In this document: positions 967-45,087 of the stretch, in pieces
How the letters are laid out: each line of letters starts with the position of its first letter
How positions within the stretch are numbered: the stretch's first letter is position 1
Assembly: GCF_963921235.1 (NCBI RefSeq)
Contig: NC_086110.1
Coordinates: 13,516,001-13,580,000, forward strand
Length of the DNA stretch: 64,000 nt
Reading direction: 5' to 3'
Source of the DNA: Mobula hypostoma
Taxonomy: Eukaryota
Notes under the pieces: model-generated
Database searches by the model: none
What the model saw: only the letters and a program-made list of their open reading frames with translations
Told to the model about the DNA's origin: nothing
Made by a program: the position numbers and the translations under genes

Positions 967-1098
967 TCACAGTTTCTTTGACGTATTCACATCAGCGTAC
1001 AATGTATGTTGGTTTTGATGTGTGAATCCTGAGGTGTTCTTGGAATCGGGAAGCTGCAGAGCAGCGTAGGTCAATTTGTCAGCTCCATTTCTTTTAGT
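967..1098 (-). CDS. Receptor gene 1, last exon with ITIM (LTYAAL) and ITSM (TLYADV)
   Basis: Acceptor ttttcacag|ACT (phase 0), reads TKRNGADKLTYAALQLPDSKNTSGFTHQNQHTLYADVNTSKKL*. The six exons sum to 930 nt, i.e. 309 aa plus stop. Confidence 0.85.
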   Translation of the reverse strand, partial: TKRNGADKLTYAALQLPDSKNTSGFTHQNQHTLYADVNTSKKL

Positions 1099-1822
1099 CT
1101 GTGAAAATATTTCAAAATCAGTGGTTAATCGAGAATCCCTTGAGTTGAACAAACTGAATCAAAAATTGTAGGGTAAATTAGTGAGCACTCATAATTTATC
1201 AATTTTAGATTTATGCCGTTTTGCACAGAGTTTATGACAACATTGTTTCAAACTTTGCCTTTTTTATTCATACGGTATTTCAACTCCAAGAACCTGTGTT
1301 ATCTCACTGAACAACCAGCTCTCTTTCCTTTCTTAATATGAACTTCAACAAAATCTAGATGGGAGAGTAGGTAACTCCTTGAAGCAGGAGGTATGGTACA
1401 AAATATTTCGCTAAGTCAAAATACAAGCACATCATTGTGTTATATGTATCTGATTGCTGCAAACTGTTTAGTCTATACACCTCACGGTGTTTCCTCAGTC
1501 ACACCTGCCAACAAAACTCGAAATACACACAGACACTGTCATCAGTGGATACCCAACGTTGGATACCCAACGATAGAATGAACGTTGGCACTTTGTTCAT
1601 TCATGCCCTATGGTTACTGCTTTGTCACAGTTCGGTATTTCCAAGAAAAACACCAATGTTCGGTTGGATCAGTGTTCCTCTGTTATTATCAGTTATTTGT
1701 GTTCATTATGGAGCTGATAATGGGCGTTGGAAAGGATGTCTGTTCCCAGATTCATGCCTTTTAGTCTTTCCTCGTTTGCAAATTACATATGAAATTAAAT
1801 TCATGAAAGCAAGGGAAGAAAG

Positions 1823-2268
1823 ATAATCTCGAGGGATTCTGCAGGAATGCAAAGAAAGATACTGATGTAATTCATTAGGTAAGGCAGCATGTACGAAGGT
1901 AAATAACCAGTCAATGTTTCTGGCCGAAACTCTTTATCAGGACGGCAAAAGAAGGAGTCAAAAGCTAGAATAAGAAGCTGGAGAAGGAATATAAGATAAC
2001 AGGTAATAGGAGAAACCATGTGAGTAAAAAGGTGTGGGGATGATGTGGGGTGGACTGACGTAAAGCTGGGAGGTGATGAGTGGAAAAACAAAAGGGTGCA
2101 AGAAGAAATCTGATAGGAGGAGACCGTGGACCCTGGAAGAAATGGAAGACGGAGGGCGACCAGTGGAGGTGATGGGGAGCCACAAATCGGAATAGAGAAC
2201 AAAGAGTAGGGGAATGATGAAATAAGTATCAAAAGTTAGAGAGATCAATGTTCATGACTTCTGGTGGG
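1823..2268 (-). mobile_element. Penelope-like element 3' end with a mutated hammerhead motif
   Basis: PEVMNIDLSNF* ORF end, pyrimidine-rich 3' region, and a degenerate core CTGATAA...GAAACATT at about 1908-1944. Confidence 0.65.
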
Positions 2269-2394
2269 AGTTCACAAGGGTGGAGAAAAAATGTGATGAT
2301 ATTTCGAGGGTGTTCATTCTTAAATGGTACAGTGACAAAGGTCTGCTCAGGTCTGTAAATTTAACCTCCTTTTGGATAATGTATATATATATAT

Positions 2395-3300
2395 ATACTG
2401 GAATCGGTTGTTAGGAATGAGATTAGGGAGTACCTGGAGGCATATCACAAGCTAGGCCAAAGCCAGCATGGTTTCCCGAAAGGAAAATCCTGCCTGTTTG
2501 ACCTACTGAAAATTGTTGAGGAAATTACAAGCAGGAAAGACAAAGGAGATGCGGTAGATATGGTGTACCTGGATTTTCAGAAGGGCTTTGGCAAGATGCC
2601 CCGCATGAAGCTGCTTAGTATGATAAGAGCCCATTAAATTACAGCGAAGTTACAGGCATCGGTGAGGCACTGGCTGATCGGCAGAAGACAGAGAGTGGAA
2701 CAAAGTGCTCCTATTCTGGCTGGCTGCCGGTTACCAGCGGAGTTCCATAGGGGCTGGTGTTGCGACCGCAGATTTTATTATGTATTTTTATGAGTTGGAC
2801 TACGGTATTAATAGATTTGTGGCTAAATTTGTTGATAATACAAACATAGGTGGAGGAGCGGGAAGTGTTGAGGAAACAGAGAGCCTGCAGACAGACTCAG
2901 GCAGTTTGGGGGAATGGACAAAGAAGTAGCAAACATAATACAATGTTAGAATGTGTATGGTGATGCACTTTGGTGAAGAAATAAACGTGTAGCCTATTAT
3001 TTAGATGGGGAGAGAATGCGAAATGCAGAAATCGAAAGGGACCTGGGCGTCCCTGTACAGGATACCCGAGAGGTTACCCTCCAGGTTGAGTCGGTGGTGA
3101 GGAACGCGAACGGAATGTCAGCATTCATTTCGAGAAATATAGAATATAAGAGCAAGGATGTGATGTTCCTACTCTATAAGGCACTCGTGAGACCGGACTT
3201 ATAGTATTGTTTGCAATTTTAGGCTCCTTATTTTGGAAACGATATACTGACATTGAAGAGAGTTCAGAGAAGATTCAGGAGAATGATTCCAGGAATAAAA
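2395..3300 (+). mobile_element. Degenerate CR1 LINE RT fragment
   Basis: VYLDFQK-like and FVDNTNIGG-like (FADDTK) motifs, plus YKALVRP, broken by stops and frameshifts. Confidence 0.85.
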
Positions 3301-3520
3301 GGGTTGGCGTAACACCATTACGCAATTACGCAGCAGTAATCCAGGTTAAATTACCGTACCCGACTAAATGGTGTGTTTCTACGTTTTCCCATGACCGTAT
3401 GATTTTCTTTGGGAGCTCGGGTTTTCTCCCACATTGCAAAGTCGTACGGATATGTTGGCTAATTGGTCAATGCGTATAATTGGGCGGCACCAACCAGTTG
3501 GGTTGGACGGCTCTGTTACA
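3300..3520 (+). mobile_element. tRNA-derived HE1/V-SINE-like SINE
   Basis: Core text acgttttcccatgacc...ctcgggttttctcccacattgcaaagtcgtacgg, also seen in the copy at 42985-43255. Confidence 0.6.
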
Positions 3521-3522
3521 GT

Positions 3523-3645
3523 ATAACAATTAGAGCACGGAAACAGGCCATCTCGGCCCTTCTAGTCCTTGCCGAACTCTTACTTTCACCTAGTCCCACC
3601 GACCTGCACTCAGCCCATAACCCTCCATTCCTTTCCTGTCCCTAA
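3523..3645 (-). mobile_element. CR1 subfamily 2 3' UTR fragment
   Basis: Reverse complement of the tails at about 17250-17375 and 19100-19230. Confidence 0.8.
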
Positions 3646-4005
3646 TATAACCATATAACCATAGATAAGCGTTATATCTCTGAGGCAATTGATTGCAATC
3701 TCTCTGCTCTACCTGAGAATAGATAATGCGCTCTTCTTTTTGAAGACCTTTGCGAAATACTTTGCTCTGCCTCATATTTAGTGGAGCATATTCAGTCGTG
3801 TGCTCAACCGCAGCTTGTTCAGCCTGTGAGGAAAAAAACATATTTAATGCTGATAACTGATACAAAGGTCAGTGATCATGAACTAAGTTTGATTCGGAAT
3901 ACCTAATAATAGAAAAGGATTAAAAAATGGTTGGAATAACATTTTGTCCACGTATAGTGATATTTTCCGTATGTTATAGCGGAAGTGGGATACCAAAACC
4001 ATAAC

Positions 4006-4133
4006 ATGAGGAATTCTGCAGATGCTTGGAAATTCAAGTCCTGACGAAGGGTCTTGGCCCGAAACGTTGACTGTACCTCTTCCTAGAGATGCTGCCTGGC
4101 CTGTTGCGTTCACCAGCAACTTTGTTGCGTGTT
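4006..4133 (+). mobile_element. Short Penelope-derived element with an inverted terminal segment
   Basis: The first ~30 bp (gaggaattctgcagatgcttggaaattcaag) are the reverse complement of the family tail seen at about 11158-11186; matches 51293-51418 on the minus strand. Confidence 0.75.
4037..4072 (+). ncRNA. Minimal type I hammerhead ribozyme motif
   Basis: AGTC-CTGACGA-AGGGTCTTGGCCC-GAAAC-GTT-GACT: stem I AGUC/GACU, intact core, stem II hairpin, palindromic ACGU stem III, GUU cleavage triplet. Confidence 0.7.
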
Positions 4134-5811
4134 ACCAAAACCATTTCACGCTGGAAGTCGCTACGTATACTTTAGATTTCCAAACAACCACTTATAACCA
4201 TCCTATCAATCGGATGGGTTTCTCAGGCCCGGCCATTTTTTTTTACATCTCTTCTGTCATATCCCTTACGCCCCTCTAAGTTTTGTACATGGGCTTTATC
4301 TAATGTGTTTCACTTACGCGCCCCGCCAAACTATTATAATTATTGACATAACCAGATTTGGTACCCAAGGTGCAATTAGGATCTGTGACCCTTCAAACTT
4401 GCATTATCTCGGTTGACAACATTGGAACAAATGGCAAGACCTGATGTGCTGTTCCTGCCTGGCTTAACCGAGGTAGCAAATACGGGAGGGGCATCTTGCC
4501 AACTGTTGAGCTTATTAGTTTTGCTGGTGAATCAATAAAATTCGAATTGAAATAAGTAGAACAGTTGGACGTGCCAGTTACAGTAAATCGCTATAACAGC
4601 ATTTGTTTTAGCTGAAATAATGGCATAGCATTCTTGAGCAATAAAGCATCAGTAAAAAAAAACTTGAACGTTTCAGCTTCAACTTAGATATTACTCTCAG
4701 AAGCGCTTCTTAATTCAGGAAGTGCTACGAACGCTGATAGATATATGACAATCTTTTTTTGCTGATAAGAAAGCCTGCTGCACCTGTTATCGTTAGGTAA
4801 AGTAAAAACATGCGCTAAAATTGGAAAGGTGATTAATGGAACACAAAAAGACGTTTCCAGTTCTAGTTAAATGGGTATACAACCGATAAAGATTTAATAT
4901 ATGCTAACGGAAGAATCCAGCTGGGACAAATTTAATAACATTGAATTGCTGGATCTGAAGTAAAACAAACAAATAAAACACACAGTAGATCAGGAAACAT
5001 GGGAGCAAAGAGAAAAAAATAACGTTTATGTTGTTTTCTGGGGAGGGGTGTTCAATCTGAAAGGACAGCGTTTTCTCTTTCCCAGGTTGTCCTTAGAGTT
5101 TTTAATTTTCGATTAAACCCAAAATGAGAGATGACAATACATTTATAGGTTTCAGGCATTGTTTTCAAAATTGAGGAAGATAATTATTCAGCATAGCCTC
5201 GTGGAGTCGGAGGTACCTTGTGGAGTTTCGTTAACCTGTGGGTATCACTGCACGGTTAATTGGAAGCATATTCGATTCCATTGCAGGTTAATCAGTGCTG
5301 TGTAGATCTTTGTTGAGAATCGGGGTTAAAAAGTTCATATGATTTTCCAAAACAACATTTCGTTGCGCTTCGTTGCATTTTTAATTTTGCCTACTGTGCG
5401 TTCAAATCAAATGTAACACATATTGCGAAATGATTCATGCCTGTACTGTATTTCCCCATTGATTACTACACCGCGATTCTCGTAAACCGACATTTGATAT
5501 ATACAATATCTCAGTCTTAGATTTGTATTTAATTATACGTCAGACGACGCATGATTAACAGCCTACATTAGTATATACTACCGTTCATCTTAGTGCAACC
5601 GGTGGTGAACTGGTGTGGAATCCTGAAAGACGAAAGGAAGCAGATGCAACAGGAAAATTCAAATACGGCTTGGATATATACTTCAGAGTAAAAAGTTCTC
5701 AGAGAGATTCATTCTTTCTTCCCACGTTTCAAATGTTAGAACAAAATAAATTTGTAATATCTCTGCTATACGTATACGTCACTCTGAAAGTAGACGAGCC
5801 ACTTCACCTAC

Positions 5812-5855
5812 CGGCTCTTCATTCTGACACCTGTCCAAAGAACTTGTGCTAATCC
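5812..5855 (-). CDS. Receptor gene 1, exon 5: short cytoplasmic exon (GISTSSLDRCQNEEP)
   Basis: Acceptor ttcttttatttttcctaag|GG, donor CCG|GTAGGT. At 44 nt it gives exactly the phase 1-to-0 change needed to join the TM exon to the last exon. Confidence 0.65.
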
Positions 5856-6292
5856 CTTAGGAAAAATAAAAGAAATTATTTGCATTGTAAAAATTGGACA
5901 TTATTCGTTTGCTACCAATCGGATTCATCGCATAAGAGGAACTGCTAAAAGTACGGATTTTTCAGAAAGCATGTTGTGGTATTGTTGTCTTAATACTGTG
6001 CATCAACATTATGGCACTATGTTCAAGAGTCTACGATATTTAACGAAGCTGAAAAGTGATAGTAGCATATGAGTGGCTATATTACATTTAAATACTGCCG
6101 CTAAAGTGGAAATTAAAATAAATGAGACATTGATGAGTTCGTTAGTTTTCTTCCCACAGTCACAGTAAGCAATAGACCTACGCCAAGTTGCTTACGCTTC
6201 AAAATATAGATTTGCCATTGCATTGAAAACTACATTTGCAGTATTCCAAAGGGATATAACGGCATTTATGAGCAAGGTACAGCATGTAAATA

Positions 6293-7498
6293 CATAGAAA
6301 CATAGAAACATAGAAAATAGGTGCAGGAGTAGGCCATTCGGCCCTTCGAGCCTGCACCGCTATTTATTATGATCATGGCTGATCATCCAACTCAGAACCC
6401 CGCCCCAGCCTTCCCTACATACTCCCTGATCCCCGTAGCCACAAGGGCCATATCTAACTCCCTCTTAAATATAGCCAATGAACTGGCCTCAACTGTTTCC
6501 TGTGGCAGAGAATTCCACAGATTCACCACTCTCTGTGTGAAGTTTTTCCTAATCTCAGTCCTAAAAGGTTTCCCCTTTATCCTCAAACTGTGACCCCTTG
6601 TTCTGGACTTCCCCAACATCGGAAACAATCTTCCTGCATCTAGCCTGTCCAATCCCTTTAGGATTGTATACGTTTCAGTCAGATCCCCCCTCAATCTTCT
6701 AAATTCCAACGAGTACAAGCCCAGTTCATACAGTCTTTCTTCATATGAAAGTCCTGCCATCCCAGGAATTAATCTGGTGAACCTTCTTTGTACTCCCTCT
6801 ATGGCAAGGATGTCTTTCCTCAGATTAGGGGACCAAAACTGCACACAATACTCCAGGTGTGGTCTCACCAAGGCCTTGTACAACTGCAGTAGTACCTCCC
6901 TGCTCCTGTACTCGAATCCTCCCGGTATAAATGCCAGCATACCATTCGCCTTTTTCACCGCCTGTTGTACTTGCATGCCCACTTTCAATGACTGGTGTAT
7001 AATGACACCCAGGTCTCGTTGCACCTCCCCTTTTCCTAATCGGCCACCATTCAGATAATAATCTGTTTTCCTATTTTTGCCACCAAAGTGGATAACTTCA
7101 CATTTATCCACATTAAATTGCATCTGCCATGAATTTGCCCACTCACCCAACCTATCCAAGTCACTCCGCACCCTCTTAGCATCCCCCTCACAGCTAACAC
7201 TGCCACCCAGCTTCGTGTCATCTGCAAACTTGGAGATGCTGCATTTAATTCCCTCATCCAAGTCATTAATATATATTGTAAACAACTGGGGTCCCAGCAC
7301 TGAGCCTTGCGGTACCCCACTAGTCACCGCCTGCCATTCGGAAATGGTCCCGTTTATTCCCACTCTTTGCTTCCTGTCTACTAACCAATTCTCCATCCAC
7401 ATCAATACCTTACCCCCAATGCCGTGTGCTTTAAGTTTGCACACTAATCTCCTGTGTGGGACCTTGTCAAAAGCCTTTTGAAAATCCAAATATACCAA
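6293..7498 (-). mobile_element. 5'-truncated CR1 LINE with an uninterrupted 368-aa RT ORF
   Basis: LDFQKAFDKVPH, GVPQGSVLGP and FADDTKL; (TTTCTATG)3 tail; AAATA(C) on both flanks may be a TSD. Confidence 0.95.
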
Positions 7499-7703
7499 AT
7501 ACAGCGCGTGGACTGGTAAAATTATTGGATTTTAAGGTCCAGCTTGTGCTGTGCCTGTTGATCATCAATGTAATCAGGTTTTAACATTACAATCTATGAC
7601 TAATCATGCTTTGATGACATCTATTCTTTTTGAAGTTCAATTTATTTAGCACATCTATTATGCACGAATCGAGGTGATATTTCTCAGCGATGAGGGCTCT
7701 TAC

Positions 7704-7802
7704 CGTGCGATCTCTTTAACTTGATTTTCACCAAAAGTATTATCAGAGCTAAAATTGCCGATCCGCCCACTGCACATGCCAGAATAAATTTAGTATCAAC
7801 GC
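7704..7802 (-). CDS. Receptor gene 1, exon 4: transmembrane exon (GVDTKFILACAVGGSAILALIILLVKIKLKRSH)
   Basis: Long pyrimidine tract then acaag|GC, donor G|GTAAGA, 99 nt, phase 1-1. About 20 uncharged hydrophobic residues followed by a basic stop-transfer stretch. Confidence 0.88.
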
Positions 7803-8407
7803 CTTGTGGATCAACGGGGGAAAAGAAGAAACAGTGAAGTATTTATACATCTAAAAAAAATGCACACATGAGAATCAACAATGCAAAATATTTTATAGGC
7901 TCCTTTCAAATTTCATTGCACAATATCGGAAAATATACCATAATACAGGAAATGTAAATTCCCACAGTTGTTATATCACGATGAGATATAAAGTTTAAGT
8001 TTTGCTTTGTCATATTTTGGGCAAATGTTCAGAAGTGTGCAACCTTACAAATACTGCACGAATTCAATTTCTTAATTCGTCCTACACAATTTAAACTAAC
8101 GGAATAACACATTAGTGTTTGAACAGGTTTCACGTTGAATATTCTCTATCAATTACGAAGCTTCATAATTAGTCATTCTTTCGTGTTTGTGTTGCTGTTC
8201 AGCTACTGCACTTACAAGGTCACATTGACCCCAGCACTATGAATTGTAAGCGCTTCCATCTTACATTGAGCGCAAAAGATTCTGAACATGCTGAAATCCA
8301 GAGAAACACTAAAAATCCTGGAAGAGCACAGCCGATAAGGCAGATCTAAAGTTTCAACGTTTAAGGCCGAGGTCAAAATTCATAACTTCATCAAGACACC
8401 ATCTTAC

Positions 8408-8701
8408 CTTGCTCTTGGATGTAGCTGAAACTGGCAGGCACCGTGAGGGAGACATGCGACACCAGACAGGTGTAAATATCTTTTCCCCAAGGAGACTGCG
8501 TGATTTCCAATAAACTAAATACTTCGTACAAGCCGTCCACGCTCCGGTTTGTCACATTTTCTATTCCAGTGCGAATTTGCTTGTTATTTCTTTGCCAAAC
8601 GAGTTCTAATTTCTCCGGGTAGAAGGCAGCCGTTTTACAAAGGAGCTTTCGAGGAGACGAAAACCCTCCAACAGGAACAATTTCCAATGGAGTAGGAGGA
8701 A
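8408..8701 (-). CDS. Receptor gene 1, exon 3: C1-set Ig domain
   Basis: Acceptor gtttttactcaag|TT, donor G|GTAAGA, 294 nt, phase 1-1. C1 motifs LLC, FYP, LVW, DGLYEVFSLLEI and YTCLVSHVSL. Confidence 0.92.
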
Positions 8702-8942
8702 CTTGAGTAAAAACAAACTTATTTTGAGTATTTTCGATCCATTTCAGTGCAGGTAGATTGCTTTATCTCCCAGACAACTGGCATGACACTCAACTATAAA
8801 ATTAGTTACCCGCCACTATTAACCAGTATTTAATAATTTTTTTTCAATTTCACGTTCTGTTTATTGTTGCTCAACCGTACACACACATCACTAAGCGAAA
8901 CATTGTTTTTTCTGGGGCCAAGTTGCGAAAGACAGTACAGTA

Positions 8943-10326
8943 CAGTGGCATGCAAAAGATTGGGCACCCCTGGTCAAAAATTCTGCCAAGCGAAAAAAAA
9001 AGATGTCCTTTTTTATCTCCAGCTAAGAGTCCTTCAATTCTTGTTTGGGGGATTTTCGCCCATTCTTCCTTGCAGAAGGCTTCTAGTTCTGTGAGATTCT
9101 TGGACCTCTCGCATGCACTGCTCTTTTGAGGTCGATCCACAGATTTTCGATGCTGTTTAGGTCGGGCGACTGTGAGCGCCATGGCAAAACAGTCAGCTTG
9201 CACCTCTCGAGGTAGTCCATTGTGAACGTTGAGGTGTGTTTAGGATTATTGTCCTGCTGTAGAAGCCATCCTCTTTTCATCTTTATCTTTTTTTTTACAG
9301 ACGGTATGATGTTTGCTTCGACAGTTTGCTAGTATTTAATTGAATTCATTCTTCCCTCTACTAGTGCCATGAGCTGCAGCACAAGCCCAAAGCGCACGAT
9401 CGATCCATCCCCGTGCTTCACAGTTGGAGAGGTGTTCTTTTCATGAAATTCTGCACCTTTTTTTCTCCAAACATACCTTTACTCATTGCGGCCAAAAAGT
9501 TATATTTTAACTTCATCAGTCCACAGGACTTGTTTCAAAAGTGCATCAGGCTTGTTTAGATGTTCCTTTGCAAACCTCTGACAGAAGTTTGTGGTGGGGA
9601 CGCAGGATAGGTTTCCTTCTGATGTCTCCTCAATGAAGGTCATATTTGTGCGGGTGTCGCTGCACGGTAGAACAGTGCACCACCGCTCCAGAGTCTGCTA
9701 AATCTTCCTGAAGGTCTTTTGCAGTTAAACGGGGATTTTGATTTGCTTTTCTAGCAATCCTACAAGCTGTTCTCTCGGAAAGCTTTCTTGGTCTTCTAGA
9801 CCTCAACTTGACCACCACCGTTCCTGTTAACTGCCATTTCTTAATTACATTGCCAACTGTGGAAACAGCTACCTGAAAACGCTTTGCTATCTTCTTATAG
9901 CCCTCTGTTGCTTTGTGGGCATCAGGCAGCTGCTTCGAGGAGCCCATGGCTACTGATTATTGGGACAAGGTTTGAGGAGTCAGAGTATTTATAAAGCTTT
10001 GAAATTTGCATAACTTGGCCTTTCCTAACGATGATTGAGAACAAGCCATCGCCCTAAAAAGCTAATTAAGGTCTGAGAACTTGGTAAAGTCAACTGAGAG
10101 CTTAAATTTCTTGTGGTGCCCAAACCTTTGTATGGTCCTCCTTTCCTTTATTTTAACTCTAAAATTGTACAAATTAAAAATAACACACCAATCTTGCCTA
10201 AAATGTTGAAAAGAATGTTTCTTCTTTAACTTTATGACTTTTGGAGATCAGTTCATCTTCTGCGCACTTAACTATTCACAGTAACAGAAATTTTGACCGG
10301 GGTGCCCCAATATTTGCATGCCACTG
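8943..10326 (-). mobile_element. Tc1/mariner DNA transposon, decayed
   Basis: ~42-bp TIRs (CAGTGGCATGCAAA...GGGCACCCC...GGTCAAAA) flanked by TA. HTH region, WTDE, QQDNNPKH and SPDLNSIENLW motifs. Confidence 0.93.
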
Positions 10327-11094
10327 TATATATAGTCACACAGAACACATGGAGTTACCATCCAGCAGAGACAGTCACAAAATAAGCAAAGTGAAATACA
10401 GTCAGTTTGGGAGACGGATGAAAGTAAGAGTTCAGAGAATACACCTCGACGGCGAAGCTTAGATGTCCGAAGTCAGGAGGACGTTCTCTGTTGAATGGTA
10501 TTTGAGCTTTAATGCACAGTTGGGTTTGCGCCGGGCGTTAGCTTTGAAAACCTAGATACGTATGGATTTTTTTTTTTTCATTTCGTATCAAGACTGAGCT
10601 ACAAAACCCAAAATATCACATATTTCTATAGTACGAATACACATGGAGATAAATATTCTGGCAGCTCAACTGCTCAGGGAGTGTTGCAGATCTTGCAGTT
10701 GAGCTCCATAGTCATAAACATCCAGTAATAGAGCTTTCCTCAGAATGTGAACCATTCCTGCAACAGTTCCCCGTGTTGAACGTGGCAAATCATTGCCTCG
10801 TGAAACAACCAGGAAGGCAAATGCAAATTGATATTAAGCGCATTGATTCTATAGATTTATTCTTTCTAAAGCGTGAAGACCTGCAGAAAAATGGTTGACA
10901 GTGAATTGGCACTGTTACAGGATTACTTGTGGAAATATTACCTTGCATAGGGTCAAAAAGGAACTGAATAACTTCAATTTAACCATACTCAGAGTTTACT
11001 AAAACTTGAGCCCAATTTTAAGGTTCTGTAAAACATGGACTTCTTCCGCTACAGCTTTAGTCGGTGTCTAACAGGGGAGATTTAGTAGTTCCTC

Positions 11095-11190
11095 CTATAC
11101 TTCTTCCTATAGATGCTGCCTGGCCTCTTGTGTTCCACCGGGATTTTGTTTGTTCTGCTTGAATTTCCAGCATCTGCAGATTTTCTCGTG
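11095..11190 (+). mobile_element. Penelope-derived short repeat (tail only)
   Basis: cttcctatagatgctgcctggcc...gaatttccagcatctgcag, same family as 4006 and 51293. Confidence 0.7.
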
Positions 11191-11224
11191 CTTGACATTT
11201 TACTAGTTCGATTCCTTTCCCTGT

Positions 11225-12545
11225 TTATCACAGCAGTTAGGATTTCGCTCTGCCTGCAGTAGCCATCCGGAGCTCACCGTTGCTCGACTCCCCGTAGCTC
11301 TTCATGCCCTAACCAATCAAGAACCTATCAACTTCTGCTTTAAATATCCATAAAGACTTCGTTTCCATAGCTGCCTGCGGCAAAAAATTCCACAGGTTTA
11401 CCACTCTCTTTTTAAGGCCTTCCTCCTCATCTCCTCTATTCTGAAGCTGCAACCTCTGGTCTTAGACTTTCCTACCATAGGAACATCCTCTCCACATTCA
11501 CATTATCAAGTACTTTCACCTTTAAATAGGGTTCAATACAGTCGGCCCTTATTTTCTGAATTCCAGTGAAAACAGGCCAGAGCCATAAAAGACTCTTCAT
11601 TGGATTAGCTAATGAATTCTGGAATCATTGTGAAGAACCTCCTTTGAGCCCTCTCCAGTTTCGGCACATGCTTTCCAAGATAAGGGGCTTAAAACTGCTC
11701 ACAATACGCCGTGACGCCTCACCAGTGCTTTATAAAGTCTTGATATTACATCATTGCTCTTATATTCCAGTCCTCTTGAAATTAATGCTATCATTGCATT
11801 TGCCTTCCTGCCCACAGACTCAATCTGCAAATTAACCTGTATGGAATACTGCACACGGACTCCCAAGTCCCTTTGCACCTCAATGTTTTAGATTTTCGTT
11901 CCAGTTAGAAAATAGTCAAACCTTTCATACCGTCCACCAAAGTTCATGACCACATACTTCTCGACACTGTATTCCATCCGCCATTTCATTGCCTATTCTC
12001 CTAGTCTGCTTAAGTCCTTCTGTTGCCTCTCTATTTCCTAAAACCCACCTGCCTGTCCACCTATCTTCATATTGACTGCAGACTTTGCAACAAAGCCATC
12101 AATTCCATCATCCATATCATTGACACACAACCTTAAATGAATCAGTCACAACACAGACCCCTGTGGAACACCGTTCGTCACGGGCAGCCAACCAGAAAAT
12201 GCTTCCCTTATTCCCATTCTTTGTCCCTTACCAACCAGCCACTACTTTCTCCACCCTTGAATCTTTCCTGTGATACTTTGACCTTGTAGCTTGTTAAACA
12301 GCCTTTTGTGTGGTACGTTGTGAGAGGTCTTCTGAAAATCCAAGTAAGCAACAATCGATTCTCCCTACCTTATCTAACCTGCTTTTCATTCCTTCAAATA
12401 ATTCAATCAGATTTTTCTGGCGAGAGTTTCCCTTGAGGAAATCATGCTGATATGGCGTGCTGTATTATACGTCTCAAAGTAACCTAAGACCTTATCCTTA
12501 ATAATGTACTCCAACATCTTGTCAACTGTACTCCAACATTTTGTC
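11225..12545 (-). mobile_element. Degenerate CR1 LINE
   Basis: Reverse-strand remnants of the DFQK and GVPQGS regions and a CR1-type 3' region. Confidence 0.8.
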
Positions 12546-14797
12546 GCCTCAAGTCTCCTACCTCCAGCCTCACCTCGCCTCAACTCTCCTGCCTCCAGCC
12601 TCCATCCTCCAGCATCGCCTCGCCTCAAGTCTCAAGTCTCCAGCCTCCTGCCAAGCCTCGCCACAAGTCTCCTGCCTCCAGCCCCCAGCCTCGCCCTGCC
12701 TCAAGTCTCCTGTCTCCAGCCTCCTGCCAAGTCTCGCCTCAAGTCTCCAGCCTCCTGCCTCCTGCCAAGCCTCGCCTCAAGTCTCTTGCCTCCAGCCTCC
12801 AGCCTCGCCCTGCCTCGTTTCCTGCCTCAAGCCTCCTGCCAAGCCTCGCCTCAAGTCTCTTGCCTCCAGCCTCCAGCCTTGCCTCGCCTCAAGTCTCAAG
12901 TCTCCAGCCTCCTGCCAAGCCTCGCCTCGTCTCTTGCCTAGCATCGAGCCTGAAGACTCCGATCTCTAGCCTCTAGCTTCTTTCCAAGCCGAGACAAATC
13001 TCTAGCCTCTAGCTTCAAGCCTGAAGACTCCAGCCTCCTGCCTCCTGCCAAGCCTTGTCTCTAATCTCTAGCCTCAAGTCTGCAGTCTCCAGCTTAATCC
13101 TGCCTGCCTGCCAAGCCTCGTCCTTGCCTAGTTCTCGGGTCCGAGCCAGTCTCAAGACCCAGGTACTGGGTCCTTGTCCAGTTCCTGCCTTGGAGTCCAA
13201 TTCGGGCTCCTAGTTCTCTTATTCAGTCCTGTTCCAGGTTCCTGGTTTTCCTGTCTATATTCTTGCCATCGCCCTGTATCCTAGTCCTGTTCCTGGTACT
13301 TCAGTGTCTGTGTCTTCAACTTGGGTCCATTCCCAGCCACCACCTTATGGCAGAACGATCCAGCCAATCATGGACCCAGCGACACAGACACTGTCGTTTT
13401 ACTCTGGGCTCCCGGGGTTCCTTTCTGTTAATTACCCTCCCACCTGCCCGGGTCGTCCATAGTCTGGATACTCTGTTTGGTCACCAGGATACTCCCGTAG
13501 AGAGGGGAGTACTGTCATGGTCTGGTCCGTGAAGTCCGTATTCCGGTTCACGGTCCAGTCCATCGACCCTTGCTCCAGGTTTTCCTGTTTACACTGTGCC
13601 TGTTCTGGTTGAGCTCTAATTGAGGCAGCTGATTCTGGTTGGGGCTGGCTGCATGAAAACCTCCAGAGACCAGGGTGTGGCTGCTGGATTGCTGTTGTCC
13701 TTACTCATTGTATCCCTTGCTCTGCCTTCTGTTTCCTCGCCTGAAACCCTGCCTTGTCTTGCCGGTAACTCTCGCCTCGTCTCGCCGGCAGTCTTGTCCT
13801 GGAGCCACCCTGTACCTAACTCCCTTCCTGTCCCTTCCCTCTGCCCAGGTAAGCCAGGCCGCCTTGCCGTTACCTGGGGTTACTTCTGTCCCTTCATGTC
13901 CCTTGCGTCCGCCCAGGTAAGCGAGGCCGTCCTGCCGTTACCTGGGGTTGGTTCTGTCCCTTCCTGTCCCTTGCCTCTGTCGGGTGGTGATCCGCGCCCT
14001 GCCCAGGAGGAGCCAAGCCTCGCCTCAAGTCTCCAGCCTCCTACCTCCTGCCAAGCCTCGCCTCAAGTCTCCAGCCTCCTGCCTCCAGCCTCGCCTCGCC
14101 TCAAGTCTCCTGCCTCCAGCCTCCAGCCTCGACTCGCATCAAGTCTCCTGCCTCCAGCCTCGTCTCGCCTCAAGTCTCAAGTCTCCAGCCTCCTGCCATG
14201 CCTCGCCTCGTCACTTGCCTAGCCTCGAGCCTGAAGACTCCAGCCTCTAGCCTCTAGCCTCTTGCCAAGCCAAGCCAAGTCTCTAACCTCTAGCTTCAAG
14301 CCTGAAGACTCCAGCCTCGAGTCTCTAGCCTCTTGCCAAACCAAGCCAAGTCTCTAGCCTACGGTCTCCTGCCAAGCCAAACCAAGTCTGTAGTCTCTAG
14401 CCTACGGTCTCCTGCCAAACCAAACCAAGTCTGTAGCCTCTAGCCTCTTGCCAAGCCAAGCCAAGTCTCTAGCCTACAGTCTCCTGCCAAGCCAAGCCAA
14501 GTCTGTAGCCGCTAGATTCAAGACTGAAGACTCCAGCCTCGTCCTGCCTGCCTGCCAAGCCTCGTCCTTGCCTAGTTCTAGGGTCAGAGCCAGAGGCAAG
14601 GCCCAGGTACTGGGTCCTTGTCCAGTCTCTGGCTAGGAGTCCAAGCCAAGGCTCCTAACTCTCTTCTTCAGTTCTGTTCCAGGTTTCTGGTTTTCCTGTC
14701 CATGTCCTTGCCAACGCCCTGTATCCTCGTCCTGTCCCTAGTACTTCAATGTCTGTGTTTTGCACTGGGGTCCATTCCCAGCCACCACCATATGGCA
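12546..14797 (+). mobile_element. Miniature Gypsy-type LTR element: truncated 5' LTR, 160-bp interior, full 3' LTR
   Basis: 5' LTR ends ...TATGGCA at 13352, followed by GAACGATCCAGCCA and a gag-like ATGGACCCAGCG at 13370. A PPT (AGAGAGGGGAG) precedes the 3' LTR, TGTCATG(13513)...TATGGCA(14797). Confidence 0.8.
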
Positions 14798-14888
14798 CAT
14801 ACATGGTAAATGATAGGGCATTGAAGAATGCTGTAGAACAGAGTGATCTAGGAATAATATGCTAGTTCACTAAATGTGGAATCTCATG

Positions 14889-16717
14889 GGGAATCTCGAG
14901 AAAAGGATTGGTCAAGACAAATGTAGGTCCCCTACAGACAGAAATATGTGAATTTATTATGGGGAGCAAGGACATGGCAGACCAATGGAACAACTACTTT
15001 GGCTCTGTCTTCACTAAGGAGGACATAAATAATGTTCCAGAAATCGGAGGGGACAGAGGATCCAGTGAGATGGAGGAACTGAGAGAAATACACGTTAGTC
15101 GGGAAGTGGTGTTAGGTAAATTGAAGGGATTAAAGGCAGTTAAATCCCCAGGGCCAGATAGTCTGCATCCCAGAGTGCTTAAGGAAGTAGCCCAAAAAAT
15201 TGTGGATGCATTAGTGATAATTTTTCAAAACTCTTTAGATTCTGGACTAGTTCCTGAGGATTGGAGGGTAGCTAATGTAAACCCCGTTTGAAAAAAGGAG
15301 GGAGAGAGAAACCGGGGAAATATAGACCGGTTAGCCTCACTTCGATCGTGGGGAAAATGCTAGAGTCAGTTATCAAAAGATGTGATAACAACATATTTGG
15401 AAAGCGGTGAAATCATTGGACAAAGTCCGTATGGATTTGTGAAAGGAAAATCATGTCTGCCGAATTTCATAGAAGGTTTTGAGGATGTAACTAGTGAGTG
15501 GATAGGAGAGAACCAATGGATGTGGTATATTTGGATTTTCAAAAGGCTTTTTACAAGGTCCCACACAGGAGATTAATGTGCAAACTTTAAGCTCACGGTA
15601 TTGGGGGTAAGGTATTGATGTGGATAGAGAATTGGTTGGCAGACAGGAAGCAAAGAGTGGGATGAAAAGGGACCGTTTCAGAATGGCAAGCAGTGACTAG
15701 TGGGGTACCGCAAGGCACAGTGCTGGGATCCCAGCTGTTTACAATATATATTAATGACTTAGATGAGGGAATTAAATGCAGCATCTCCACGTTTGCGTAT
15801 GACAAGCTGAGCGGCAGTGTTAGCTGTGAGGAGGATGCTAACAGGATGCAGGGTGACTTGGATAGGTTAGGTGAGTGGGCAAATTCATGGCAGATGCAAT
15901 TTAATGCGGATAAATGTGAGGGTATCCACTTCGGTGGCAAAAATAGGAAAACAGATTATTATCTGAATGGTGGCCGATTAGGTAAAGGCGAGTTGCAACG
16001 AGACCTGGGTGTCATTACACAACAGTCGTTGAAAGTGGGCATGCAGGTACAGCAGGCGGTGAAAAAGGCAAATGGTATGCTGGCATTCATAGCAAGAGGA
16101 TTCGAGAACAGCAGCAGGGAGGTACTACTGCAGTTGTACAAGGCCTTGGTGAGACCACACCTGCAGTATTGTATGCAGTTTTGGTCCCCTAATCTGAGGA
16201 AAGATATCCTGGCTATAGAGGGAGTACAAAGATGGTTCACCAGATTGATTCCTGGGATGGCAGGACTTTCATATGATGCAAGACTGGATCGACTAGGCTT
16301 ATACTCGTTGGAATTTAGAAGATTGAGGGGGGATCTTATTGAAACGTATAAAATCCTAAAGGGATTGGACAGGCCAGATGCAGGAAGATTGTTCCCGATG
16401 TTGGGGAAGTCCAGAACGAGGGGTCACATTTTGAGGATAAAGGGGAAGCCTTTTAGGACGGAGATTAGGGAAAACTTCTTCACACAGAGAGTGGTGAATC
16501 TGTGGAATTCTCTGCCACAGGAAACAGTTGAGGCCAGTTCATTGGCTATATTTAAGAGGGAGTTAGATATGGCCCTTGTGGCTAAAGGGATCGGGGGTAT
16601 GGAGGGAAGGCTGGTACAGGGTTCTGAGTTGGATGATCAGCCATGATCATACTGAATGGCGGTGCAGTCTCGAAAGGCCGAATGGCCTACTCCTGCACCT
16701 ATTTTCTATGTTTCTAT
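14889..16717 (+). mobile_element. CR1 LINE (same subfamily as 6293) nested in an older CR1
   Basis: 317-aa RT C-terminal ORF and a TTTCTATG tail. The flanks 14798-14888 and 16718-17375 are consecutive parts of a subfamily-2 CR1 (compare 18481 onward). Confidence 0.9.
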
Positions 16718-17375
16718 GATATAGCGGTAAAGAAAGCTTTTGGCATGCTGGCCTGTATTAATCGGAGCATTGAGGATGGGAGTTGGGATGTAATGTTGAA
16801 ATTGTATAAGGCATTGGTAAGGCCAAATTTGGAGTATTGTGTACAGTTCTGTTCACCGAATTATAGGAAAGATGTCAATAAAATTGGGACAGGACAGAGG
16901 AGGTTTACTAAAACGTTGCTTGCGTTTCATCTCATAAGTTACAGAGAAAGGTTGAACAAGTTAGGTCTTTATTCTTTGGAGCGTAGACGGTTAAGGGGGA
17001 ACTTGATAGAGGTGTTTAAAATTATGAGGGGGATTGATAGAATTGACGTGGATAGGCTTTTTCCATTGAGAATGGGGCAGATTCAAACAAGAGGACATGA
17101 GTTGAGAGTTAAAGGGCAAAAGTTTAGGGGTAACATGAGTGGGAACTTCTTTATTCAGAGAGTGTTAGCTGTGCGGAACGAGGTTCCAGTAGAAGTGGTT
17201 GAGGCAGGTTTCATTGTTGTCGCTTAAAGTTTAATTGGATAGATAAATGGACAGGACAGGAATGAAGGATTACGGGCTGAGTGAAGGTCGGTGGGACTAG
17301 ATGAGAGTAGGAGTTCGGCACGGACTAGAAGGGCCAAGATGGCCTGTTTCTGTGCTGTAATTGTTATATGGTTAT
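16718..17375 (+). mobile_element. CR1 subfamily 2 3' portion (host of the nested insertion)
   Basis: YKALVRPNLEYCVQF and RRRLRGNLIEVFK, followed by the 3' UTR. Confidence 0.88.
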
Positions 17376-19230
17376 AAGATACGAGGCTGTTTTGGAAAGT
17401 AAGGTGAAAATAAATCCAAAGGGTTTCTACAGTTATATTAATAGCAAAAGGATAGTGAGGGATAACATTGGTCCCTTAGGGAATCGGAGTGGACAGCTAT
17501 GTGCAGAACAAAAAGAGATGGGGGAGATTTTGAACAAATTCTTTTCTTCGGTATTCACTCAGGAGAAGTATATCGAATTGTGTAAGGTAAGGGAAACAGG
17601 TAGGGAAGTTATGGAAACTATTTTGATTAAAGAACAGTAAGTGTTGGAGCGTTGAATGAATATAAATGTGGACAATTCTCCGAATCCTGACAGGATAATC
17701 CCTAGGACCTTGAGGGAAGTTAGTGCAGAAATAACAGGGGCACTGACGGAAATATTTCAACTGTCATTAGTCACGGGGTTAACGCCGTAGGGATGGCGTA
17801 GTGCTCATGTTGTTCCATTGTTTGGAGAGGGTTCTCAGAGTAATCACCAGCCTGTAAGTGTGACGTCAATGGTGGGCAAATTGATGGAAAGTATTCTTAG
17901 AGATGATATATACAATTATCTGGATAGACAGGGTCTGATTCGGAATAGTCTACATAGATTTGTGTGGAAGGTCCTGTTTGAATAATCAGATTGAATTTTT
18001 TGAAGACGTTACTAGGAAAGTTTACGAGGGCAAAGCAGTGGATGTTGTCTATATCGACTTCAGTAAGGCCTTAGACAAGGTTCCACACGGATGGTTAGTT
18101 AGGAAGGTTCAATCGTTAGATATTAATATTGAAGTAGTAAAATGGATCCCAACAGTGGCTGGATGGGAGACGCCAGAGAATAGTGGTGGATAATTGTTTG
18201 TCATGTTGGAGTCCGGTGACTAATGGTGTGCCTCAGGGATCTGTACTTGTTCCAATGTTGTTTGCCATATACATTAATGATCTGGATGATGGGGTGGTAA
18301 ATTGGATTAGTAAGTATGCAGATGATACTAAGATAGGTGGCCTTGTGGATAATGAAGTAGTCTTTCAAAGCTTGCAGAGAGATTTAGGCCAGTTAGAAGA
18401 GCGGGCTGAAAGATGTCAAATGCAGATTAATGCTGGTAAGTGTGAGGTGCTACAGTTTTGTAGGACTAATCAAAATATGACATACATGGTAAATGGTAGG
18501 GCATTGAAGAAAGCAGTAGAACAGAGGGATCGAGGAATAATGGTGCATAGTTCCCTGAAGGTAGAATCTCATGTGGCTAGGTTGGTGAAGAGAGCTTTTG
18601 GTATGCTGGCCTTTATAAATCAGAGCATTGAGTGAAGAAGTTGGGATGTAATGTTAATATTGTACAAGGAATTGGTAAGGCCAAATTTGGAGTATTGTGT
18701 ACAGTTCTGGTCATCGAATTATAGGAAAGATGTCAGCCAAATGGAGAGGCTACCAGAGAAGATTTACTAGAATGTTACCTGGGTTTCAGCACCTAAGTTA
18801 CAGAGAAAGGCTGAACACGTTGGGTCGTTATTCTCTGGAGCATACACGGTTGAGGAGGGACTTGATAGAGATATTTAAAATTATGAGGGGGATAGATAGA
18901 GTTGAAGTGGATAGGCTTTTTCCATTGAGAGTAGGGGAGAGTCAAACAAGAAGACATTAGTTGAGAATTGGGCGCAAAAGTTTAGGGCTAGCACGATGGG
19001 GAACCTCTTTACTCTGAGAGTAGTAGCTGTGTGGAACGAGCTTCCAGCAGAAGTAGTAGAGGCAGGCTCGATATTGTCATTTGAAGTAAAATAGACAGCT
19101 ATATGAACAGGAAAGGAATGGAGGGTTATGGGCCGCGTGCAGGTCGGTCGGACTAGGTGAGAGTAAGCATTCAGCACGGACTAGAAGGGCCGAATTGGCC
19201 TCCTTCCGTGCTGTAACTGTTATATGGTAA
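17376..19230 (+). mobile_element. CR1 subfamily 2, frameshifted
   Basis: DFSKALDKVPH, GVPQGSVL, YADDTKIGG and the 3' UTR. Confidence 0.9.
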
Positions 19231-20268
19231 TATGCTTATATAGATTAGATTATTTTTCCCATGATTCGTAAGAGAATGAGTGAACATTTGACAGAGGTAT
19301 ACAAAATTATGAAGGTGGCAAATATGCTGCATTAAAGCCTGCTTCATCCACTGAGGTTTGGTGAGAATGCAATTGGAAATCAGAGCTTAAGTGTGACTGA
19401 GAAGCATTAAAGACAAACCTGAGCAGAAATGTCTGTATTCAGGCTGTAATGCTACTGTGGAATTAGCTGCCAGCGGAGGTGTTGAGAGTGGGTTTGCGCC
19501 CGTCTGTCTACCCTTTACTATCTAACTCCATCAAAATTCACCTTGATCTCGAGAGATGTATATTTCTCCCCATTTTGTATGGTGAAAGAAATGTGGATTT
19601 TGCTAATCCTGCATGAAAAAAGTTGGAATGACAATTTTCAGTGCCTGCGACAATTTGTTGCTTGATGTTGGAATGAAGTCTTTTGGAGCTGGGTATTATT
19701 CCTGTCTACTGGTTGATACGGAAATGGAGCATTGTGCTGCATACAGACTCTTTGATAGAGATTATATGTTTTCATATTTCTGGCGTCTGTGATGACGAAT
19801 CGAGTCATCCAACTCCAGCCATTCACATTATTATCAGTATTATTTCAACTTCTTGCATGCAAAACAATCCTAACATTACTTGACAAGTAATTCGTTGTAT
19901 TCAAAGTACCTTCGCGATAATAAGGGTAAAGTCCAAAGGTATCATAAACCTTGGACATTAGGTTTAACTGGGAGATAGCTCATGAACAGGGTTGGACAAA
20001 CAGCAGCGGGAAAGAGTCGGGGGAAGTGCGATACGATAAACAGAAGTAACTCTATTGTGCACCTAATAGATGCTACATGAAAAGTAATTAATTATTCTGT
20101 TCATTAAAATTCTGAATTTAGAATATCAGGACTGGGGTGTATTTAAACACGGAAAACAAATGTATTGTCGCCTTTTGCTTTATCAAGTAGAAACATTTCG
20201 TTAGATCCTCATCACTAAGTTTGATGTAAAATGCACAGGGCTGAAAATCTCATAACAGTCACACTCAC

Positions 20269-20574
20269 CGAACACAGTGAGCTTGGTGCCACTTCCATTC
20301 CCGAAAGAGTGCCCCTGATAGTTTGCTTCACAGTAATACAGTCCGGAGTCGGCCACTTTGGCATTCCACAGTGCAAGTTCTTCCCTTCCCCTTCCTTGCA
20401 TAAAATGTCTTCTGCTGTCGCTTTTTAAAAATACCTTCTCGCCTTCCCTCCACCAACGAACGTCAACAGTATCTTGAGATAGTGGAAATTTGCATAACAT
20501 AGTAACATTCGTACCACCCGGGACGTTCAGATCCCTAGGTAATTGAGATACTTCGCTCGCAGTTACTTTGACGG
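20269..20574 (-). CDS. Receptor gene 1, exon 2: germline-joined VJ-type Ig domain
   Basis: Acceptor ttattttccggcag|CC, donor G|GTGAGT, 306 nt, phase 1-1. Carries MLC, VRWWR, ELAL, DSGLYYC and J-like GSGTKLTV in one exon (ORF 20201..20668). Confidence 0.92.
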
Positions 20575-20778
20575 CTGCCGGAAAATAAGCAAGAGTATTA
20601 ATAACAATCAGATACAGTGAATTTAAAATAAAACGTAAGACGTAAGTCACTGGACATCTAAGAGCCAAAGGCGACCGAATAGCTGGAACACTGCAACCAA
20701 ATATGTTGCTGGCACCCAGTGTTTAATGTTCTAAAATACAACGTTCAGTTCGGAAACGGCATATATAAATTAGCATAC

Positions 20779-20833
20779 TCAGCCAAGTAGTAGCTAGAAG
20801 TGCCATATACGAAACGGTAAATTTCCCCGACAT
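20779..20833 (-). CDS. Receptor gene 1, exon 1: signal-peptide exon (MSGKFTVSYMALLATTWL)
   Basis: ATG at 20833, 18 codons plus 1 nt, then donor A|GTATGC (phase 1). It joins the V exon across a 204-bp intron to give MSGKFTVSYMALLATTWL-T-VKVTA/SEVSQ, a typical leader. Confidence 0.8.
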
Positions 20834-20839
20834 CCTACA

Positions 20840-21010
20840 AAAACCGAATCAACCAATTCCTGCAATGCCAGTGGTAATTTAAAGAGTTTTCTGGAGGAAA
20901 AGGTCTTCGTGAGGAAATTGTTTGATCATGTTAACATGACGTAGGATGACGCCTCCGCAAGTCAGAATAATGTGGTTTAGGTTTAAACTCTGCCTGGGTT
21001 GGGAGGAAAG
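20840..21010 (-). promoter_or_regulatory. Candidate proximal promoter of receptor gene 1
   Basis: ETS-type GAGGAA at 20894, 20911 and 21003, RUNX TGTGGTT at 20971-20977, and TGACG at 20947, all within 180 bp of the ATG. These are short motifs and could occur by chance. Confidence 0.35.
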
Positions 21011-33623: not shown

Positions 33624-33761
33624 TCAGCTTCTCGTCTTCTTTAAAGTATGTACATCTGCGTACGTTGCACATTCCTGTTTCTGAATGAATGCAGATGTAT
33701 CTTTGATACTGAGAAGGTGCAGAGTTGCCGTGGCCAGCTTGTTAATCTTATAACTTGTGAT
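33624..33761 (-). CDS. Paralogous receptor gene 2, last exon (ITSYKINKLATATLHLLSIKDTSAFIQKQECATYADVHTLKKTRS*)
   Basis: Same tttcacag phase-0 acceptor as gene 1. Aligns without gaps: KLTYAALQL/KLATATLHL, KNTSGF/KDTSAF, TLYADVNTSKK/ATYADVHTLKK. Confidence 0.75.
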   Translation of the reverse strand: MTSYKINKLATATLHLLSIKDTSAFIQKQECATYADVHTLKKTRS

Positions 33762-38875: not shown

Positions 38876-39442
38876 ACATGCGGCACGAACGTTTATTTAG
38901 ATATAATTTTAAAATCGTTACCATATATTGATGGAACATAGCAAAATTATTTAAAATACGTTCTGATTTTGAGCACTTCAGATAATATGACAAAACACAT
39001 GTTGAATGTTAACAATGTTAAATACACAAAAAAGTGAGGTTACCCAAAGGAGTACCTCTTTCGACAAGTGATTTACATTTCCATNNNNNNNNNNNNNNNN
39101 NNNNNNNNNNNNNNNNNNNNNNNNNNNNNNNNNNNNNNNNNNNNNNNNNNNNNNNNNNNNNNNNNNNNNNNNNNNNNNNNNNNNNNNNNNNNNNNNNNNN
39201 NNNNNNNNNNNNNNNNNNNNNNNNNNNNNNNNNNNNNNNNNNNNNNNNNNNNNNNNNNTACATGTAGCATGAAGGTTTATTTAGATATAGTTTTAAAATC
39301 GTTACCATATCTTGATGGAGCGTAGCAAAAAGAATAATTTTAAACACGTTCTGATTTGAGGACTTCAGATAATATGAGAAAGCAAATGTTAAATGTTAAC
39401 AATGTTAAATACACAAAAAAGTTAGGTTACCAAAAGGAGTAC
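38876..39442 (+). repeat. Diverged ~180-bp direct repeat flanking an N-gap
   Basis: About 38876-39060 and 39259-39442 align with scattered substitutions. Confidence 0.85.
39085..39258. other. Assembly gap (174 N)
   Basis: Run of N. Confidence 0.99.
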
Positions 39443-44958: not shown

Positions 44959-45087
44959 NNNNNNNNNNNNNNNNNNNNNNNNNNNNNNNNNNNNNNNNNN
45001 NNNNNNNNNNNNNNNNNNNNNNNNNNNNNNNNNNNNNNNNNNNNNNNNNNNNNNNNNNNNNNNNNNNNNNNNNNNNNNNNNNNNNNN
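44959..45087. other. Assembly gap (129 N)
   Basis: Run of N. Confidence 0.99.

Follow-up and report, generated by a model that had tools for sequence, protein, structure and literature searches.

C1-set domains are rare outside immunoglobulins (Ig), T-cell receptors (TCR), the major histocompatibility complex (MHC) and their helpers. The long-standing precedent for a variable (V) domain joined to a C1 domain outside the antigen receptors is the signal-regulatory protein (SIRP) family (PMC2785349, PMC12975943), which has been the main argument for a myeloid V+C1 receptor predating the rearranging antigen receptors, and the idea that V+C1 receptors with an immunoreceptor tyrosine-based inhibitory motif (ITIM) are kin of antigen-receptor precursors also comes from the SIRP literature (PMC2785349). 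In elasmobranchs, UrIg and UrIg2 are non-rearranging VJ-C genes with a split leader and with V and the joining (J) strand in one exon; UrIg2 carries 9-11 C domains and dimerises, an ITIM tail being unreported, and UrIg was described as antibody-like (PMC12227049). The teleost novel immune-type receptors (NITR) and PRARP (mentioned in PMC11599192 and PMC10751288) have non-rearranging V domains with J-like motifs, often together with ITIMs, and have been proposed as relatives of antigen-receptor precursors. Here we describe a gene of related shape within a 64,000-nucleotide stretch of Mobula hypostoma DNA (contig NC_086110.1, positions 13,516,001 to 13,580,000, assembly GCF_963921235.1; hereafter the window, meaning the whole stretch analysed, in whose numbering exon positions are given). 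The gene was identified at chromosome OY992605.1:13,516,967-13,536,833 of assembly GCA_963921235.1, matching to the base the span of the original prediction, which had been made from the letters alone. The locus most likely encodes a seven-exon type I membrane receptor, SIRP-alpha-like and inhibitory, belonging to a tandem V-C1 paired-receptor family of cartilaginous fish.

Exons, transcripts and domains of the gene

The NCBI product of the locus, P0001, carries the name 'tyrosine-protein phosphatase non-receptor type substrate 1-like' (SIRP-alpha-like) and has 346 residues, with 100% identity over the C1 exon in an exhaustive HMMER search using that exon as the query. A seven-exon coding sequence of 1041 nt, spread over 20 kb of DNA rich in transposons, was found to give a translation identical to P0001, with 346 codons, an intact frame and correct phases. 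The exons (E1 to E7) and the long intron between the V and C1 exons are listed below (TM, transmembrane; ITSM, immunoreceptor tyrosine-based switch motif).

20833-20779, minus strand: E1, ATG at 20833 (start in agreement with P0001), 18 leader codons plus 1 nt, donor GTATGC
20574-20269, minus strand: E2 (V), end of the leader, V-set domain and J-like G strand FGNGSGTKLTV, phase 1 to 1, donor GTGAGT
20268-8702, minus strand: intron 2 (V to C1), 11.6 kb
8701-8408, minus strand: E3 (C1), VPPTPL linker and C1-set domain, phase 1 to 1
7802-7704, minus strand: E4 (TM), short stalk, uncharged TM helix (hydropathy scan) and stop-transfer sequence KIKLKRSH, phase 1 to 1
5855-5812, minus strand: E5, 44 nt, juxtamembrane spacer, phase 1 to 0
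3823-3713, minus strand: E6, 111 nt, 37 residues with Y278 (TEYAPL) and Y301 (IIYSQT), phase 0 to 0, strong polypyrimidine-CAG acceptor
1098-967, minus strand: E7 (last exon), ITIM LTYAAL (Y314), ITSM TLYADV (Y337), stop TGA at 969-967

The original prediction had joined six minus-strand exons with GT/AG sites and matching phases into a 309-residue protein. All six are present, with AG/GT borders and phases 1-1-1-1-0, and their join, leaving out E6, is indeed an open frame of 309 residues, but the seventh coding exon, E6, had been overlooked, and the product supported by P0001 and by the E5-to-E6 RNA junctions has 346 residues. Since E6 belongs to P0001 and to the RNA transcripts, the 309-residue form would be an in-frame version with exon 6 skipped, and the cytoplasmic tail is longer than predicted because E6 was missed. 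A 312-residue isoform with this exon-6-skipped layout is known for P0153, a relative from Mobula birostris. A weak AAG acceptor at 3813 was considered for exon 5 and dropped, as P0001 and the RNA junctions show two exons, 5855-5812 and 3823-3713.

For transcript evidence, RNA contigs holding the C1 exon from four runs (X1-X4, under two organism codes) were placed on the 2900-8800 stretch of the window. Spliced junctions of GT..AG type on the minus strand were identified at 8408|7802 (C1 to TM, 4 runs), 7704|5855 (TM to E5, 3 runs) and 5812|3823 (E5 to E6, 4 runs). Of the five junctions originally proposed, C1 to TM and TM to E5 were thus seen in RNA, and E5 was found joined to E6 in the four runs; the main transcript of each of these samples thus includes E6. 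Contig X4-25 (465 nt) holds 71 nt of C1, TM, E5, E6 and a further 141 nt fitting the last exon, and in contigs X3-15 and X1-1 the E6 piece stops exactly at 3713, followed by 647 and 633 nt that lie elsewhere and fit E7 plus a 3' untranslated region of at least about 500 nt. The contigs of X1 and X3 show no differences from the window, and those of X2 and X4, under the other organism code, a few base differences. For the V exon, 100% of the sampled words were found in run X1. The locus is a real, expressed gene.

Exon 2 was recognised as V-set by Pfam (3.7e-11) and carries the DxGxYxC motif. The cysteines of this compact V domain enclose 53 residues, and the AlphaFold model, in which both Ig domains have a confidence score (pLDDT) of about 90, shows no C'' strand. 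As predicted, the J-like GSGTKLTV lies within the V exon: FGNGSGTKLTV ends exon 2 with the splice donor directly after it, and V and J are therefore joined in the germline. Also as predicted, no recombination signal sequence (RSS) flanks V; heptamer-12/23-nonamer sites are absent from 19500-21200 on either strand, against a whole-window background of 0.41 per kb. In place of the separate, RSS-flanked V and J segments of Ig and TCR genes, exon 2 holds V and J without a break, and the split leader followed by a germline VJ exon is the arrangement of UrIg and UrIg2. On reading the sequence, neither a WYRQxPG-type interface motif in the V domain nor a stalk cysteine for a covalent dimer was found.

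The C1 assignment of exon 3 proved sound, with a Pfam C1-set value of 1.7e-12 against 0.025 for the butyrophilin-type and 0.15 for the CD80-type C domain. According to PMC2785349, C1-set domains are marked by (F/Y)(F/Y/H)P in the BC loop, by exactly 13 residues between the strand-B Cys and the Trp of strand C, and by xVxH following the Cys of strand F. All three are present, as F147-Y148-P149, as 13 residues between C142 and W156, and as C199-L-V-S-H203, and these residues are invariant in an alignment of 18 family sequences. A tblastn search with 52 family proteins found no second C1 exon in the window, leaving one C1 exon between V and TM, and no additional V or C exon was found there with family proteins.

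The cytoplasmic tail has 96 residues with tyrosines at Y278, Y301, Y314 and Y337, spaced 23/13/23, and in the same 18-sequence alignment the four positions are conserved from chimaera to rays. LTYAAL and TLYADV, both in the last exon as originally noted, conform to the ITIM and ITSM patterns and stand 23 residues apart, and the E4 helix is free of charged residues, also as claimed. The earlier inference of an inhibitory receptor thus holds, as a prediction from sequence, for a protein with VJ, one C1, an uncharged TM and an ITIM/ITSM tail. In the proposed mechanism, the V domain would bind a ligand, Src-family kinases would then phosphorylate the tail tyrosines, and SHP-1/SHP-2-type phosphatases, held by their tandem SH2 domains on the paired phosphotyrosines 23 residues apart, would damp activation of the receptor-bearing leukocyte. 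Other receptors have comparable spacings: about 23 residues in PECAM-1, about 25 in PD-1, and about 24 and 26 for the two pairs of SIRP-alpha. PD-1, PECAM-1, BTLA and the CD33-type Siglecs have an ITIM followed about 23-25 residues on by TxYxx(V/I), an arrangement that suits the tandem SH2 domains of SHP-2 and SHP-1; the likeness is one of signalling logic only, their ectodomains being unrelated to that of the present gene.

When window positions 5755-5856 (minus strand) are read through the E5 donor, the frame continues as ...NEEP-VGEVARLLSE-stop, a short tail without tyrosine motifs. This end matches the C-termini of the annotated short-tailed paralogues P0155 and P0004, which suggests loss or skipping of the E5 splice as a possible origin of tail-less members. 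Such read-through might also supply a tail-less isoform of the present gene.

A tandem family of cartilaginous fish

Word-indexed and profile searches yielded 34 relatives, all from cartilaginous fish, in Mobula, Hypanus, Hemitrygon, Pristis, Chiloscyllium, Scyliorhinus, Heterodontus, Heptranchias and Callorhinchus, and in Rhincodon through a cluster look-up. Every member whose source is named is chondrichthyan, and holocephalans and elasmobranchs are both included. Word-indexed protein searches with an E-value limit of up to 10 returned the same 34 chondrichthyan proteins only, and no named SIRP, TCR, Ig light chain, NKp30, NITR or PRARP. The boundary of the family is sharp in the C1 profile, with members scoring 94-148 bits and all others at most 50 bits (best 150 matches, library of 1.84 billion representatives). 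When 231 C1 domains are placed in one tree, the 35 that belong to the family group together as a single clade with SH-aLRT support of 99, and the stem of that clade measures 0.67 substitutions per site. Their sister in this tree, with a support of 84 only, is made up of C1 domains that come later in two multi-C1 models of amphibian type, whose names are uninformative.

Among the amphibian and other bony-vertebrate models, P0141, P0143, P0119, P0122, P0060 and P0075 show V(J-like)-C1-TM followed by more C1 domains. Each of these long models probably runs together several tandem genes of a V-C1 family, so far without a name, in amphibians, and it was their later C1 domains that gave the weakly supported sister group of the C1 tree.

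The automatic names of the members vary widely, including SIRP-alpha-like, SIRP-beta-like, NCR3LG1-like, TCR-beta-like, Ig lambda-like, tapasin-related-like, PD-L1-like and MHC class II-like; such inconsistency is expected where no true Swiss-Prot orthologue exists. The present gene is one ordinary member, already publicly annotated under a sensible automatic name. A literature search for this chondrichthyan V-C1 family found no paper describing it, and recent papers on shark MHC and UrIg2 mention no SIRP-like or ITIM-bearing V-C1 genes.

On OY992605.1, at least 5 paralogues on the same strand were identified at 12.84, 13.09, 13.52 (the present gene), 13.65 and 13.77-13.83 Mb, forming an array of about 1 Mb or more, and the Callorhinchus members are clustered too, at 15.25-15.37 Mb of MU249845.1. 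The V-C1 layout is common to dozens of independently modelled relatives, and members with two C1 domains (P0026) reflect recent duplications of one C1 exon. The tails are of several types: long ITIM tails as in the present gene, short tails by E5 donor read-through (P0004, P0155), and, in the shark members P0069, P0173 and P0133, short tails together with arginine and aspartate in or at the TM. With its tail-less and charged-TM members, the family therefore behaves as a paired-receptor set, organised like SIRP alpha/beta/gamma; as far as TM and tail sequences can tell, its members look like a set of inhibitory, tail-less and activating receptors.

Between close paralogues the V domains share 66-68% identity, against 84-88% for the C1 domains. 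In the comparison with P0151, synonymous (dS) and non-synonymous (dN) divergence and their ratio (omega) were 0.25, 0.18 and 0.75 for V, and 0.08, 0.05 and 0.59 for C1, with few substitutions in each case. This difference between V and C1 is consistent with selection on the binding domain being either diversifying or relaxed, and with some homogenisation of the C1 exon. P0151 itself (L002, OY992605.1:13.09 Mb), the closest paralogue with 77% identity, has lost the J-like GxG (FFVSSCGTSLTV) and the first tail tyrosine (TPHVSL), indicating rapid motif turnover within the array.

Relation to SIRP, UrIg and the antigen receptors

The present family resembles the SIRPs in its V-set domain with J-like GxGTxLxV in one exon, its true C1 domain(s) and single TM, its four tail tyrosines in two pairs (which in SIRP-alpha recruit SHP-1/2), and the occurrence of tail-less members and of charged-TM members of activating type within its gene cluster. 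The membrane-distal position of the V-set domain and the germline J-like G strand are likewise those of a SIRP. The differences are a V domain about 10-15 residues shorter, C1 domains in a clade of their own, and one C1 rather than two, because of which the gene falls outside the definition of a SIRP. In a Foldseek search of Swiss-Prot, SIRP-alpha of cow, human and rat ranked first (E 1e-16 to 2e-14) with 15-17% identity, all listed matches having 13-21% identity. The nearest named outsider with both domains is a coelacanth 'SIRP-beta-1-like' protein, with 47 bits for C1 and 26 bits for V, to which hhalign aligned the family profile collinearly over V, J and C1 (probability 98.8, E 4.5e-17, 26% identity). 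The C1 score to this coelacanth protein is no better than that to Ig lambda or MHC; since all C1-bearing groups score similarly, the family is about equally distant from each. None of SIRP, NKp30, UrIg and Ig/TCR could be shown to be a one-to-one orthologue, identity being 13-26% throughout.

Several points weigh against the reading of the locus as a SIRP-alpha-like inhibitory receptor of a paired family. Phosphatase recruitment and leukocyte inhibition by the tail are predictions from its motifs, and two of the four motifs are non-canonical, IIYSQT being without a hydrophobic residue at +3 and TEYAPL having T at -2. The lead of SIRP-alpha in the Foldseek ranking is narrow, with TCR-beta, TAPBPL, PD-L1, CD276, NCR3LG1 and Ig lambda/kappa, as well as Skint and butyrophilins, following within three orders of magnitude. 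The high dN/dS against P0151 fits an immune receptor but equally fits relaxed constraint. Transcript depth is low, with a word depth of 3-40 over the gene exons. Finally, the V-to-C1 junction across the 11.6-kb intron lies outside the 2900-8800 stretch and was not directly observed in RNA; this splicing we infer from the V words in X1, the matching phases, the lack of another V or C exon in the window and the same layout in relatives.

One alternative, which we regard as possible though on balance not the case, is that the family is the chondrichthyan co-orthologue of tetrapod SIRPs, possibly CD47-binding, that has lost one C1 domain. Many members are named SIRP-alpha-like or SIRP-beta-like by NCBI, SIRP-alpha is the best Swiss-Prot structural match, and the alignment with the coelacanth protein runs collinearly across V, J and C1. 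Inhibitory, tail-less and charged-TM forms occur as in SIRP alpha/gamma/beta, and the tail of four tyrosines in two pairs is common to both, the spacing of 23/13/23 here standing beside about 24/17/26 in human SIRP-alpha. On the other hand, the family has one C1 and not two, the second C1 of P0026 being a recent duplication, the coelacanth SIRP-like C1 reaches 47 bits only, and in the C1 tree the family stands alone on its stem of 0.67, away from SIRP-like domains. Moreover, the best 60 PDB matches of the present V domain, a list in which multi-domain proteins dominate through their summed scores, include TCR-alpha V, Ig light-chain V and amphioxus VJ-C2 but not SIRP-alpha V.

The gene also has likenesses to the antigen receptors. 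It shares with Ig light chains and TCR the order V-J-C1, Ig light chains are its best structural matches in PDB by Foldseek (20-23% identity), and lambda J carries an identical J motif, GTKLTV. It differs from them in lacking RSS and an interchain cysteine, and in having a TM with a long signalling tail and a compact V. With UrIg and UrIg2 it shares occurrence in cartilaginous fish, the split leader, the germline VJ exon, C1-type constant domain(s) and the absence of rearrangement, and it differs from them by its single C1, ITIM/ITSM tail and large tandem array; in place of the several or many C domains of UrIg and UrIg2, and of clustering with them, we found one C1 in a separate clade. P0002 and P0003, probable UrIg2-type multi-C1 proteins of shark or ray, gave no match to the V profile and at most 44 bits per C1 domain.

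From such likenesses one could take the family as an independent surviving branch of the VJ-C1 precursor that existed before RAG, kin of UrIg/UrIg2 and of Ig/TCR, with the inhibitory tail added later, a proposal that we consider doubtful. Its split leader, VJ exon and phase-1 C1 exon are as in UrIg/UrIg2 and the antigen receptors (PMC12227049), and it occurs in holocephalans and elasmobranchs alike. Among the best 60 PDB matches by sequence, the best single-domain match of the C1 profile is human Ig lambda C (44 bits), with UrIg2 second overall, and the best full-length matches of V are TCR-alpha V, Ig light-chain V and amphioxus VJ-C2. Standing against it, the UrIg2-type P0002 and P0003 do not match the V profile, the V domain with its 53-residue span and missing C'' strand is compact, the WYRQxPG-type interface and the stalk cysteine are absent, and the near-equal similarity to every C1 group points to no specific affinity; linkage to MHC or antigen-receptor complexes was not found in the look-ups made. 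Likewise doubtful in our estimate is the wider proposal of a separate line from the non-rearranging VJ-C1 ancestor of Ig, TCR and UrIg, dating back at least to the parting of chimaeras and sharks and rapidly diversifying as paired innate receptors; if true, the family would be a living example of the role of a pre-RAG antigen receptor on leukocytes.

The NITR and PRARP families differ from the present gene in their second domain. Both are described in bony vertebrates, are not known from chondrichthyans, and have a second domain of I-type or C2-type, PRARP in particular reportedly having the architecture V(J)-C2-TM-ITIM (Fu et al. 2019), while the second domain of the present gene is C1-set by Pfam. 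Calling it 'PRARP/VJC1-type', as was originally done, is thus too loose, and the proper precedent for V(J)+C1+ITIM is SIRP (PMC2785349).

It is very unlikely that the gene encodes a B7/butyrophilin-type ligand (NCR3LG1-, PD-L1- or CD276-like) with incidental tail motifs. Several paralogues bear the automatic names NCR3LG1-like or PD-L1-like, and PD-L1, CD276, NCR3LG1, Skint and BTN are among the Foldseek matches with the best TM-scores (0.45-0.54), but the Pfam C1-set value of 1.7e-12 stands against 0.025 and 0.15 for the C domains of butyrophilin and CD80 type, all three C1 hallmarks are present where CD80 domain 2 is without them (PMC2785349), a J-like G strand exists, and the four tyrosine positions are kept from chimaera to rays. 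A decaying gene, or an annotation artefact stitched from exons among transposons, to which the 20-kb span in transposon-rich DNA, the low RNA depth, the fairly high dN/dS and a neighbouring orphan tail exon without its ITIM tyrosine might point, is largely refuted and scarcely credible given the intact 346-codon frame over seven exons with correct phases, the exact spliced junctions in four RNA runs, the retention of all family-invariant structural residues and the confident fold prediction (pLDDT about 90 in the Ig domains).

Surroundings of the gene and its meaning for chondrichthyan immunity

The only gene called within 10 kb downstream is retroelement debris, and look-ups around the paralogues of Mobula and Callorhinchus either remained inside the cluster or found nothing. 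In the part of the shark MHC gene tables examined, the automatic names of the family are absent save for one genuine MHC-IIA entry.

The orphan copy of the last exon lies at 33636-33761 (minus strand), with a CAG acceptor, an open frame and a stop, and reads KLATATL for KLTYAAL, the second motif being ATYADV. As tblastn with family proteins found no other family exon in the 21-64 kb part of the window, it belongs to a paralogue starting beyond the window or is a relic. The V-C1 intron contains, at 12544-14515, GC-rich minisatellites with units of about 31-69 bp, mainly 38 bp, in up to 10.5 copies, giving a local GC peak of 0.53 and long spurious Ser/Leu/Pro-rich open reading frames on both strands. 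The intron repeats reach a word depth of 10^4 to 10^5 in the RNA contigs, against 3-40 for the gene exons. Runs of N were observed at 39085-39258 (174 bases) and 44959-45087 (129 bases). The introns, intron 2 included, are densely filled with remains of mobile elements, as follows.

6392-7498 (minus), 15693-16646 (plus), 16643-17227 (plus), 17368-18960 (plus) and 9630-9947 (minus): fragments of long interspersed element (LINE) reverse transcriptase (Pfam RVT_1) and a remnant of a Tc1/Sleeping-Beauty-type transposase helix-turn-helix

The present gene, taken by itself, is useful for the history of immunity and is not surprising. As an expressed, chondrichthyan-only V(J)-C1 family with SIRP-like tails, the family adds a second and much older data set on the origin of antigen receptors, and it supplies candidate pairs of inhibitory and activating receptors for the leukocytes of sharks and rays, whose innate repertoire is poorly known.

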